64,000 bases of DNA, taken from assembly GCF_032444005.1 (NCBI RefSeq), contig NC_091290.1:133114001-133178000 (forward strand). The letters are read 5' to 3'. The position numbers and the translations under genes are program-made. The first letter of the stretch is position 1. Each line of letters opens with the position of its first letter. This document shows positions 47,896 to 56,800 of the stretch, piece after piece. Under the pieces are notes generated by a model. It had not been told where the DNA came from. It did no database searches and was given only the letters and a program-made list of their open reading frames with translations. The stretch comes from Ranitomeya imitator. Lineage: Eukaryota.

Positions 47896-50800
47896 CTGAA
47901 AGAGATAAGAGTCAGAAACCACAAGTCATAAAGCTGTACCTGCTAGCTCGGGTCACGAATACTTGCAAACCTATCGAATCTGCAAATGTGTCTTTACATA
48001 GATGACCCATGCAATCAGACTCATGTCTGAAAGCTAGTTACATTCCTCCCTCTGTGTATTAGCCATCCACTTTCCAAGTTGGGATTAGAATTGATCCTGC
48101 AACAAAGAGTCACTTTGGGCACAATCTAGGTCATCCATTCCTGCCTTGATCTTACCTGCGTGACAGCTGGTCTTCCGGGGTGCGGGTGGAACTCTCTCCC
48201 ACGGATGACGCTCCCTGGGGAAGCTGGTTCAGCTGATCCATGACTTCCAACCCATTCTCTTCCGCGATCTGCAAGATCAAGTTATCCACCTGTTCCTGCG
48301 GAGTGGTCAGGGTCATAGCCGATCCCATAGAGTCTTCCATCACCTGTGAAAAACAGAGTTAAAAGATTACTGATGGATCACAAAGAAAGGGAAAATTATA
48401 CCAAGCTGGTTTATGTACCCAGACAATAAAGAATGTTTAAAAGGGTTTGTCCATCCTTAGGAAAAGTGATGGTAAGTTACCTGGCATCTTCACTGATCTG
48501 ATACTGAAGACCTATCCTAAGGACATTAGTATCAAAAGGCCGGACAACCCCTTTAATCTGCATCTTCAAATTCTGTCGACTTCCATGTTTCATTTGACCA
48601 AGGATCAAGAATTTGTCCTATTTTGCAAATTAGTCATTAATTGCTCTGTACCATAGGACGGTGACTATACAGTGGGTGTAAGGAAGTATGGGAGGCGGGT
48701 GTCTATAGCGTAGTGACTGCAGACTGCTGGACATGACTGCCACTTAGGGGACATGAGCAGCGGTGCATGATAACAGACTGAGAACTCACCGACGTGTGAA
48801 CATCCAAATTCTGAACCTGCTGCTCAAATTTATCCATAACAGCCGACACCTTCTGCAGGTCCATGGAGCCCAGTGCCTTGTCCAGAGCCTTTGTCACCTG
48901 AGCCATGTTCTTCGTCACCTAAATGCAAAAAACAGGATTTTTGGTTGCTTACCGTAAAATCTGTTTCTCGGAGCCTTCATTGGGGGACACAGGAACCATG
49001 GGTGTATGCTGCTGCCACTAGGAGGCTGACACTATGCAAATAAAAAGTTAGCTCCTCCTCTGCAGTGTACACCCTACCAACAGGAAGTAGGATCTTCAGT
49101 TAGTGAGAAAGCAGTAGGAGAAGCAACGTGTAAAAGAGAAAGAATAATAATATAATAATAATAAACTTTATCTACAGAGCGCCAACAAATTCCACGGCGC
49201 TCCACAAATTAACAGATTCAAACACTCAAAGAGTGTTCAAAGAACTCAAACGTATACAGTAAACAGGAATGTTCAACTTGGGAGGGTGCTGTGTCCCCCA
49301 ATGAAGGCTCCGAGAAACAGATTTTACGGTAAGCAACCAAAAATCCTGTTTTCTCTATCGCCTTTCATTGGGGGACACAGGAACCATGGGACGTCCCAAA
49401 GCAGTCCCTGGGGTGGGAAAAAACGGACTTCCATCAGGTCCGAGGACTCACCACTGCCGCCTGCAGGATCCTTCTGCCCAGGCTGGCGTCCGCCGAAGCA
49501 TAGGTACGGACCTTGTAGTTCGGCAAAACGTGTGGATGGAAGACCAGGTTGCCGCTTTGCAAAGCAGTCGGCGAAAGCCTTGTGACGTACCGCACTGGAA
49601 GCGCCGACCGCCCGGGTAGGGTAGAGTGAGCCTTAATCCCAGGAGGGGGCACTCTGCTCCTGACCCGGTAAGCTTCCAAAATTGCCGTTCTGATCGAGCA
49701 GGCAATAGTCGCCTTGGAAGCCGGCAGGCCTCTACGCACGCCATCAGGGATGGCGAAAAGAGAATCCATCTTTCGGAAAGCGGCCGTGCTAGCCAGGGAG
49801 ATCCTCACTGCCCTGACGAGTTCCGGACTGTTCAACGATCGCTCCAGAGGGTGAGTCGGAGCTGGACAAAAGGTAGAAACGATGTCCTCGTTGAGGTGGA
49901 AAGATGAAAACCCCCTCGTTAAAGGAAGGAAGGCGGAGGCCTGGGACCACCTTGTCCTGGTGGAAAAAAATCGAGAAAGGAGGTCGGCAAGAAATGGCCG
50001 CCAACTCAAAAACGTGGCAGATCGAAGAGATGGCCCTGATGAGAGCCACCTTCCGAGATAGAACTGACAGGGAAAACTCCCTGAGAGGCTCAAAGGGGGA
50101 ACCCCTAAGAACAACCAGCACAACCTTTAAAGCCCATGAATCCACAGAGGCCCTGTACGGAGGGACAGTGTGGGCTACTCCTCGAAGGAAGGTCTTAGCC
50201 TGTGGCTGAGAAGAGAACGTCTTCTTAAAGGGAAGAAGAGCGCAGGAACCTGGCCCTTTAGAGAACTGAGAGCGAAGCCCGAATCCAGTCCTGCCTGAAG
50301 GAAAACCACATGGAAGGCAGGGAAAAGGACATAGTGACAAGCGGTTGGACTCGCATCAACGAAAGTAAGCCTTCCAGGTACGAAAAGTAGATCCTGGAAG
50401 AAGACGAAGGCTTCCTAGCCTGGATTATAGTGTGACCCATCCGGTCCGAAAGGCCGGACGCTCTCACAACTGTGGAGTCCACAGCCATGCCGTTAAACTG
50501 AGCGACCGATAATTCGGGTGGCAGATCGGACCCTGAGACAGCAGATCGGGTCTGTTTGGAAGGCACCAGGGGTGTCCGTGAGAAGATTGACGATGTCCGC
50601 AAACCAAGACCTCCTGGGCCAATCCAGGACGATCAGAATGACCGGCACCTATCCCGCCTTGATCTTTCGACAGCTTGGAAAGCAAGGGAACCGATAGGGG
50701 AGCACGAACTGCGACCAAGGAATGGCCAAAGTGTCAACACCACTGCGAGAGGATCGCGGGACCTTGGGATGACCCGAGGGACCTTCCTGTTCCATCGGGA

Positions 50801-53800: not shown

Positions 53801-56800
53801 ACACCGGTGGGCGGAGATTGCAGGGCACAGTTTGTCGGGCGGGAGAAAGCCCGCCCGAAGAAAGCGGAAGTTGAGGAGCGCGGTACCGGAAGTAGGCCCC
53901 GGCGGAAGCCGGGACCTAAATTAGAGGCCGGCGCCGCTGGAAAAAGATCGCGGCCCCGGAACAATGTGCCGCAGAGCAGCGCGGTAGCCTGCCAGGGCCG
54001 CAGGGAGGACGGAATAGTCGGAAGGCGGCGCCGAAGTAGGCCCCGGCTGAAGCCGGGACCTAAATTAGAGGCCGGCGCCGCCGGAAAAAGATCGCGGCCC
54101 CGGAACAATGTGCCGCAGAGCAGCGCGGCAGCCTGCCAGGGCCGCAGGGAGGTCGGAAGGCGGCGCCGAAGTAGGCCCCGGCAGAAGCCAGGACCTAAAT
54201 TAGAGGCCGGCGCCGCCGGAAAGAGGATTGCGGCGCCGAAGCCTGCAGGGCGGCCGCCGGGGGGAGCGGTGCCGACGCCGCCAGAAAAGTGACATTGCAG
54301 CCGCAGCGCGACCGCAGGGAGGACACTGCGGCCCCGTAGAAGGGGATAACCTGTAGTGCAGAGCTACTGCACGTCTTGCTGCCCCTGGGATTCCTTTTAA
54401 AATGAGATCAGCGCCGCCATAGAGGATAGAGCAGCGCATCTAGGGACTACTACTCCCCCACACAGCGAGAGAGTAAGGGGGGAAGATCTGGAGATTTAGG
54501 GGAAATACTCACCTTAGACATCCCACGCAGTTACTAACCTGAGGGGATTGAGACGTCCACGGAGCTGTGATGGACGTCCTCGTCTCCTCCAACCGACAGG
54601 CTCTGGTGGGCGAGTGGGTGGGGGACGGAGCCAGGACCGGACTTCTCAGCACGCTTGTGTGCTAGGATCTTGGTCCTGGAGAGGGATCTATGAGGATACG
54701 GGGTGGCAGTACACGCCGTACTCATAGTCCGCATTGTGGGAGTACAGGTGTGACTGCTCACCCTGTATCCCTCCGGAAAACCTGAAAAGGAACGACGCAC
54801 ATTGAGGTAGATAAGGGTCTAATGAAAGACCCGTGTCCACCTCCTACTGACACTAAGCTAAACTGAAGATCCTACTTCCTGTTGGTAGGGTGTACACTGC
54901 AGAGGAGGAGCTAACTTTTTATTTGCATAGTGTCAGCCTCCTAGTGGCAGCAGCATACACCCATGGTTCCTGTGTCCCCCAATGAAAGGCGATAGAGAAA
55001 AAAGCAGAAAATGGAAAGAGGTCTTATTATTTATATAGCAATGACATGTTAAATGGAACAGTACATGGGATGTATTCATTTATATAATTGTCAATCCTGA
55101 CAAACAAAAAAATTTTTTTACACATCCGAATTCTACCGCTACCTAGTACAGCATAGAAGGCTGGTCCACACCAAATTGAGAAGACATGTCTGATATTGAT
55201 CCAAGTGCTGGGTCAAGATCAGTAATGTGAGTCTACGGGTCCATAAAAAAAAAAAATTACAACTGCGCTCAGAAGGTAGAAAAACTTTTTTGTTTGTTTC
55301 TGATCAGAGAAAAACGGAAGACACTTGGGCGACACTCTGCACAAACTAACTGATGAAACTAGACGTCCAATAGGTGATCACGTATTGATCGTGAGGGACT
55401 GACCACTGGGACCCGCACTGATCAACAGAACAGGCAACTTTTATCATAGTTATAAAATGGAACAACGGGTCGGGTGCCTGAACATCACGCCACTGATTCT
55501 TTATGGAGCTGCCAGAAAAAGGTGAGTGCAGTGATCAGCAGCCCCATATGGATAAAGTTCCTCATTCTGCAGATTGGTGTTGGTTCAAGTGCTTGGGTCC
55601 CCTCTGATCAATAATTTATCACCTATCCTGTGGATAGCAGATAAATCTGTTGTCTGGAGAACACAAGTTAAGCTAGAACGACCCCATACTATGTGCCCCA
55701 TTAGGCTGGCGTCTCATGTAGCGTTTAGAGCACCCATAGAGTGGCTGCTGGGGAGAAGTTTCCCAAAAGTTGCAGTGGCTTTCTGCTAAAGTATAAATAA
55801 ATTGTTAATAACTGCGTTTTCTGCAAAACCGTCCGTCCATTAAAAATGTAAAGTGCTGCGGAATATGGTGACGCTACAGAAATAAAATTATTATTAATAA
55901 TAGGCAAGCTGGTTGCAATAATTTGTAATGATGCCATGGAAAGCTAAAGAAGCGGCTCTGTAGCAACCACGCTATATGCGCTCTGAACATTACCTAAAAA
56001 CTTTATGAAAGAAGGTGTGGCGCTGCAAAGCGCATCCCACGTTTTGGAAGATTTGTGACCACCATACAGTATATGATCATCAAATTACTTCAATAGGCAA
56101 AACCTATGAATTACTGAACTATAGATGTGCCCGCAGCTCGCATGGGTTGTGGCATTTGTATATACAACCCCTTAATTATAGCAGCAAAGTGTTAACATAA
56201 TTTAAATGCTTACCTCTGACTTGCATTGGATTCTCCCCTAGTGGATTATAGCAGTGGCAGCTGGACCAGGGCAGGCTTCACTCTGCACCTGCAATCCTCT
56301 GCTGCTTACTAGGCCTCCAGCAATGTCTTGCCTGGACCTAGTAAGCAGCAGCGGATTGCCGGCGCAGAAGTAAAGGCTGCCCTGGTCCAGCTGCCACAGA
56401 GGACCACACTGGACCCCAGACCAGGGTACTTAGACTCAGCGTGTTCATCTCCAATGGCTGGGGTGAATTCATCAGTTTAGGGGGTGCAGTCACACGGGTG
56501 TAAAATGGTCTGAAATTTGCTTTGCTCCCAACTGGGAGTGTCAGGACACATACCCCCTTCATGGTAACTGCTGTTTGCACTTTAGAGGCGACAGCGTCTA
56601 CCCGGGATGCCATCCGAAGCCAGTTCAGCCCCTCGTTCTTCTTCCTGATTGCGTTCTCGGCATACACACGGGCAACATCCACATTCTTCTGCTGCAGAGC
56701 CTGTGGGAGGAATGAAGACAATGCTCAGAATTAACAAGCACACCGAACCGTAATCACCGAAATACAAACTGCTGAACGATTATACAGGAGGAATTCAGGT

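Follow-up and report, generated by a model that had tools for sequence, protein, structure and literature searches.

Several DIRS1-like retrotransposons have been described whose ends and integration bear directly on the locus reported here. Piednoel et al. (2011) report that 23 of 28 DIRS1-like elements have at both ends an NTT triplet that is the complement of their 3-bp circle junction, and recombination with an identical genomic triplet, leaving no duplication, is the model restated for them (PMC3266345). XtDIRS3 of Xenopus is listed as TTT/TTT/AAA, and TTT starts are seen in XtDIRS2 and in AcDIRS2 of Anolis (PMC3266345). The same account of NTT ends and triplet recombination is repeated by Malicki et al., and the internal complementary region of DIRS-1 is essential by experiment (PMC7192593). 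The Xenopus DIRS paper makes no mention of insertion sites or introns, and the literature searched yielded no work on DIRS copies located at splice acceptors. Here, we describe a DIRS1-type copy in intron 4 of the ESCRT-III gene CHMP1A of Ranitomeya imitator, within a 64,000-nucleotide stretch of contig NC_091290.1 (the window; all positions are counted from its first letter). We consider it likely that this coding-defective copy entered by crossover at a T-run in the exon 5 polypyrimidine tract and that the acceptor is still working.

Host gene, junctions and anatomy of the DIRS copy

The host gene reads on the minus strand, and the parts of it that matter for the insertion are as follows (in this and later lists, what each assignment rests on is given in brackets).

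56554-56700, minus strand: CHMP1A exon 4, residues 36-84, with donor GT at 56553-56552 (CHMP1A match and loose letters of RNA contigs)
48919-56553, minus strand: CHMP1A intron 4, 7635 nt, about 6.07 kb of it DIRS element (exon borders)
48790-48918, minus strand: CHMP1A exon 5, 43 codons, residues 85-127, with acceptor AG at 48920-48919 (RNA contigs and Snf7 match)
48156-48343, minus strand: CHMP1A exon 6 (RNA contig joints and CHMP1A match)

The exons were compared singly with solved CHMP1A and CHMP1B. The exon 4 translation matches CHMP1A at E 1.3e-23 vs 1.9e-15 for CHMP1B, the exon 6 translation (residues 128-189) does so at 3e-26 vs 4e-8, and the exon 5 translation matches Snf7 in Pfam (E 5.5e-4). 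By these matches CHMP1A is a far better identification of the host gene than CHMP1B, and the flanking exons bear out the identity that the first-pass annotation of this DNA had given to exon 5. A mini-exon (...DTLFQLK) lies upstream; the number 5 for the exon at 48918-48790 would hold provided that a first exon with the start codon exists outside those located.

The 3' junction, read on the CHMP1A strand, consists of AATCCTG (48939-48933), TTTTTT (48932-48927) and GCATTTAG (48926-48919), followed by GTGACG (48918 onwards), which places element-specific sequence 14 nt from exon 5. At the 5' junction the gene strand reads CTCTTTCCATTTTCTGC-TTTTTT-CTCTATCG, where the T-run (54998-55003) is again 6 long. 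Element-specific letters therefore extend over 48933-54997 on the minus strand, and the ambiguous terminal T-runs widen the span to 48927-55003. The junctions and the parts of the element are listed here from the 5' end.

55004-55020, minus strand: displaced distal host polypyrimidine tract (CTCTTTCCATTTTCTGC), abutting the 5' end of the element (sequence)
54998-55003, minus strand: 5' junction T-run, T6, not assignable between host and element (sequence)
48933-54997, minus strand: DIRS1-type copy, element-specific part (repeat pairs and internal complementary region)
54861-54986, minus strand: arm of the 5' inverted terminal repeat; the terminus reaches about 55001
49437-50599, minus strand: tyrosine recombinase remnant, with frameshifts near 49940 and within 49520-49630 (protein match)
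49284-49390, minus strand: internal complementary region, whose TTTT at 49349-49352 is the circle junction (self-comparison of the window)
48976-49101, minus strand: arm of the 3' inverted terminal repeat; the non-repeated terminus continues to 48929
48927-48932, minus strand: 3' junction T-run, T6, which at present forms the centre of the polypyrimidine tract of exon 5 (sequence)

The inverted terminal repeats (48976-49101 and 54861-54986) are 126 nt each and 100% complementary. The internal complementary region is complementary to both ends of the element, at 64/64 positions to the left end (48929-48992) and at 42/42 to the right end (54960-55001), and its plus strand reads AATCCTG-TTTT-CTCTATCG. 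Judged by these letters, the region is a record of both element ends joined via four Ts. On its sense strand the element starts with TTT(T)CTCTATCG and ends with AATCCTGTTT(T), which are NTT-triplet ends of the DIRS1-like type. Of the hallmarks of that type, the element has inverted terminal repeats, an internal complementary region, NTT ends without target duplication and the coding sequence, broken by frameshifts, of a tyrosine recombinase. Because the internal complementary region lies near the 3' end and the recombinase remnant reads on the minus strand, the element is in CHMP1A orientation. The terminal repeats, the internal complementary region and the 3' junction uphold the first-pass claim of a 6-kb DIRS element 14 nt from exon 5, and the strand of the recombinase remnant agrees with the sense orientation claimed for it.

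The proposed mechanism is as follows. A circular form of the element with a TTTT junction would recombine with a stretch of some eight Ts within the exon 5 acceptor's polypyrimidine tract, and the crossover would leave T6 on each side with no target duplication. Subtracting the four Ts of the circle junction from the 12 Ts at the two junctions gives a rebuilt target run of T8; the first-pass annotation had counted runs of 6 and 7 (13 Ts) and a target of about T9, which the two runs of 6 correct. The host flanks share only the T-run, with no further target duplication, and beyond that run the host site and the circle junction have Ts alone in common, with no wider mimicry. The letters of the junctions support a crossover between the T4 circle junction and a host T-run; the recombination step itself we infer. 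T-run integration, as proposed in the first-pass annotation, is consistent with these junctions. It is not new, since it matches the model published for frog and lizard elements (PMC3266345), to which the CHMP1A copy, whose junction has a fourth T, adds another instance.

The exon 5 acceptor and splicing from exon 4

Several features of the junction suggest how the acceptor would survive the insertion. The AG and the last 8 host bases are intact, a T6 run is still in place, and the TCCTG at the end of the element holds the proximal 18 nt at 78% pyrimidine. The pyrimidine share at -20 to -3 is 14/18 now vs 15/18 in the rebuilt site, and at -30 to -3 it is 17/28 vs 24/28. The displacement of the polypyrimidine tract reported in the first-pass annotation is therefore seen over the wider interval, and its statement that most of the tract was displaced is too strong for the proximal one.

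48951-48955, minus strand: candidate branch A at 48955 (TTTAC), then donor-like ACG/GTAAGC with GT at 48952-48951 (motif scan; here and below a slash marks the splice position)

Within the 80 nt preceding exon 5, YTNAY occurs once, as TTTAC, with its A at 48955 (-37), which is the position at which the first-pass annotation had placed its candidate. One AG lies between this A and the true AG, 6 nt past the A; an AG so near to a branch A is too close for use. Since the original branch point is now 6 kb off, in carriers the branch must be in DIRS terminal sequence. From the motif scan, a branch point within DIRS sequence is plausible, and the A at 48955 is the best candidate.

Assembled contigs of four sequencing runs were compared with positions 47800-53799. 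Three are RNA-like (X3, X4 and X6, from three studies), in that their contigs have joints that bridge introns 5 and 6, with GT..AG borders when read on the gene strand; the fourth (X1) is a DNA run. Each of the three RNA-like runs has one contig that covers 48786-48919 and continues as CCCTTCATGGTAACTGCTGTTTGCACTTTA, the reverse complement of which is the end of exon 4 (...AAAGTGCAAACAGCAGTTACCATGAAGGG). The exon 5 contigs of all three runs thus continue into the reverse complement of ...AGTTACCATGAAGGG, the exon 4 end. The exons are joined at 56554/48918, and the extra base placed at 48919 is a G that fits either side. The depths of these contigs are 285 (X3), 325 (X4) and 138 (X6), vs 3.7-11.8 for intron 5 contigs. 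The joints and loose ends listed for the compared stretch include none that links DIRS sequence to an exon of CHMP1A, and none of the RNA contigs listed crosses 48919-48933. The first-pass annotation had suggested that the element may alter splicing; as the main outcome this finds no support in the three RNA-like runs, where exon 4 is joined exactly to exon 5 at depths of 138-325. The insertion looks tolerated, and the main transcript is normally spliced as far as the assemblies show. One joint of the DNA run, from 48557 to 49151 with a side of 21 letters, was set aside as a chance match to AT-rich sequence.

Donor-like sites, coding state and age of the element

The sense strand of the element carries six donor-like sites, including the GTGAGT and GTAAGC sites named in the first-pass annotation, and the displaced host tract now faces an AG of the element.

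54970-54971, minus strand: possible cryptic acceptor CACAG/G (first AG; outside the stretch compared with RNA)

This AG (54971-54970) is the first past the displaced tract, and it is followed by the donor-like sites AGG/GTGAGC (54761) and AAG/GTGAGT (54512). As read from these motifs, the displaced tract and the 5' end of the element may form a cryptic acceptor and exon. Nearer to exon 5, the donor-like site at 49451 would join exon 5 in frame. The one at 48952 has no more than about 32 nt between it and the AG, which leaves too little room for a splice to exon 5.

Gene models elsewhere in the species use equivalent sites. Of the 16 protein matches to the recombinase piece of the element, twelve (P0005-P0016) are Ranitomeya imitator gene models whose beginning lies within a DIRS recombinase and which then pass into a host protein; the host parts include Rab21, a family 2 glycoside hydrolase, Rabaptin, tRNA-dihydrouridine synthase, TRAF3IP1, MINDY and others. 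The DIRS part ends after ...RRILQAAV in 4 models, at GTG/GTGAGT (the equivalent of 49451), and in 5 models it ends after a short piece of the terminal repeat at ACG/GTAAGC (the equivalent of 48952). Both sites thus score as real donors in these automatic gene models, which are not RNA evidence. Two of the chimeric models (P0010 and P0015) also match 10196-10327 and 35220-35374 of the window at 73-86% identity, the latter on both strands, and other repeat families in the window are probably annotated as exons in this species.

The element does not have the intact reading frames of an autonomous copy and is coding-defective. Its recombinase remnant (50599-49437, minus strand) is 63% identical (E 9e-46) to a protein of Ranitomeya imitator annotated as 'Tyr recombinase domain-containing protein' and contains an HST motif, with the match distributed over three frames; the longest stop-free stretch on the sense strand of the element is 230 codons. 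Proteins P0006-P0009 of the same species show the identical out-of-frame reading of the recombinase catalytic region. Since these frameshifts are common to other copies, the defect is probably older than the insertion at CHMP1A. The shared lesions suggest that the copy was born defective, and it was probably mobilised by enzymes of other copies. A search of the protein Atlas with pieces of the element gave no usable match. Two further parts of the element can be added.

50636-51165, minus strand: RNase H-like remnant and following domain, read by eye (translations; no Pfam match)
53889-54293, minus strand: a unit of about 140 nt, present three times in tandem, in the 5' region of the element (repeat family in self-comparison)

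DIRS1-like elements also encode a reverse transcriptase, an RNase H and a methyltransferase-like domain; in the wider region 50636-51756 there are motifs that, by eye only, resemble the DIRS RNase H and its neighbouring domains. The tandem units at 53889-54293 have 97% and 63% identity to the first and lie upstream of the recognisable coding remnants. In two of the RNA-like runs (X3 and X6), contigs match the element up to 52191 and 52225 and then continue for 44-224 unlike letters, a departure that could mark either splicing inside a DIRS transcript or a break between subfamilies.

The paired terminal sequences, some 230 nt in all, have zero differences. As a rough estimate, the pairwise terminal divergence would be below roughly 1.3% (3/230), provided that the pairs were identical at insertion, and the identical pairs suggest, again roughly, a fairly young insertion. 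The end module of the element is far commoner and more variable than its coding body. Summed contig depth in the DNA run is about 1e5 on the terminal repeat and internal complementary region (48930-49400) vs about 1e3 in the interior (49600-53800), and many contigs of that run omit parts within 48995-49290. No second copy of the element was found in the 64-kb window by blastn of the element against it, and exact-pattern scans of metagenome contigs with the element's 3' end and the conserved repeat core returned no match. Just upstream of the element, intron 4 holds a 22-nt A/T-rich inverted repeat that is 91% complementary (55100-55121 and 55276-55297).

Alternative explanations and known systems

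A number of points weigh against a T-run crossover by a defective DIRS copy that left a working acceptor. The T8 of the empty site is the product of arithmetic and was not read from an empty allele or an orthologous site. The unique flanks have a depth of 0 in the DNA run, probably through filtering, so the support for the junction is that of the assembly. For the RNA, the compared stretch stops at 53799, short of the element's 5' terminus and of exon 4, and contigs lose rare isoforms; that the animals sampled carry the insertion we infer. A Pfam search with 15 reading-frame pieces at E values up to 10 found no reverse transcriptase, RNase H or recombinase/integrase domain. Against this background we weighed four other explanations.

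The strongest of them, although still less probable than not by some way, is that a minority of transcripts is disturbed, the acceptor at 54971-54970 being used with the donors at 54761, 54512, 49451 or 48952 to give DIRS exons, skipping of exon 5 or degraded DIRS-CHMP1A chimeras. The AG and the six donor-like sites are positioned for this, the donor at 49451 is in frame with exon 5, in nine gene models of the species the DIRS part stops precisely at the counterpart of 49451 or of 48952, and human Alu insertions in acceptor tracts cause exon skipping (PMC3219598). However, no such joint or loose end is among the rows listed, and in each of the three runs the canonical contig passes unbroken from exon 4 to exon 5; moreover, the chimeric models are automatic annotation, and one of the two donors they use is the one that lies about 32 nt from the AG. 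We regard it as unlikely that the insertion is a polymorphism or is confined to the animal that was assembled, in which case the RNA would come from non-carriers and its normal join would be uninformative. The perfect terminal repeats do indicate a recent event, no RNA contig listed crosses 48919-48933, and the junction is covered by no independent DNA run. Yet the gene was found in three studies under one species label, and the destruction of an essential ESCRT-III gene would be unexpected in a reference animal in good health, except in the heterozygous state.

The remaining two concern the junctions themselves. That a staggered cut gave rise to the two T6 runs by duplicating the target site, in place of a conservative crossover, is suggested by their equal length (6 and 6), but we consider it very improbable: four Ts separate the joined ends in the internal complementary region, so that some of the terminal Ts are the element's own, and DIRS1-like elements are described as free of duplications (PMC3266345). 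Least probable of all is that the assembly has misplaced a repeat copy in intron 4. The ends of this DIRS family are extremely abundant (about 1e5 vs about 1e3 for the interior) and no read independent of the assembly spans a junction, but both junctions are clean and consistent with the element's own circle junction, the interior has zero-difference contigs at low depth, and there is no assembly gap within 6 kb of the element, the N runs lying at 39381-39509 and 42170-42298. The crossover of a defective copy into a T-run, with the acceptor still working, thus remains the explanation that we favour.

A conserved ESCRT-III gene with a 6-kb element 14 nt before one of its constitutive exons, and with the normal splice apparently kept, is a clean natural case. 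If carriers are confirmed, exon 5 would take its branch point from a mobile element, and the locus would be a useful test of the minimal acceptor context for a vertebrate exon. It can also be imagined that sense-oriented frog DIRS elements with a TTT(T) core land in intron polypyrimidine tracts above chance and survive there via their own TTTAC and pyrimidine patch, while conserved donors (the counterparts of 49451 and 48952) join DIRS sequence to downstream exons of host genes genome-wide. We put this forward as a doubtful speculation only. Such genome-wide splicing of DIRS to host exons is hinted at by the nine gene models whose DIRS part ends exactly at those two sites; a reshaping of acceptors across the genome by T-run-seeking DIRS elements is so far without support, and it would be cheap to test on the full assembly.

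Among described systems, XtDIRS2 and XtDIRS3 of Xenopus tropicalis and AcDIRS2 of Anolis (PMC3266345) are the closest to the CHMP1A copy. All are about 5.6-6.2 kb long, with inverted terminal repeats of about 100-140 nt whose outer ends diverge, an internal complementary region close to the 3' terminus, TTT ends with an AAA circle junction, and no target duplication. The CHMP1A copy differs in having four junction Ts instead of three, in being coding-defective, and in belonging to a poison-frog lineage with a terminal part that is far more abundant than the interior. DIRS-1 of Dictyostelium discoideum (Cappello 1985; PMC7192593) likewise combines terminal repeats with an internal complementary region from which the ends are restored, but it targets mainly other DIRS-1 copies at centromeres, whereas the CHMP1A copy lies in a gene intron.

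Two further systems resemble the CHMP1A case in setting rather than in the element itself. L1-driven Alu insertions, for example in NF1 (PMC3219598), share with it a T-rich target and a tract just before an exon. They arise by endonuclease cleavage and target-primed reverse transcription, make duplications and lead to exon skipping and disease, whereas CHMP1A exon 5 is normally joined in the assemblies. In the LAP2alpha domain of TMPO and in ZNF451 (PMC4495291), DIRS1-like sequence within or beside a host gene is linked to it by splicing, as may be compared with CHMP1A; those, however, are ancient, fixed coding exons derived from gag, while no DIRS exon is seen among the RNA contigs listed for CHMP1A, in which exon 5 is reached directly from exon 4.

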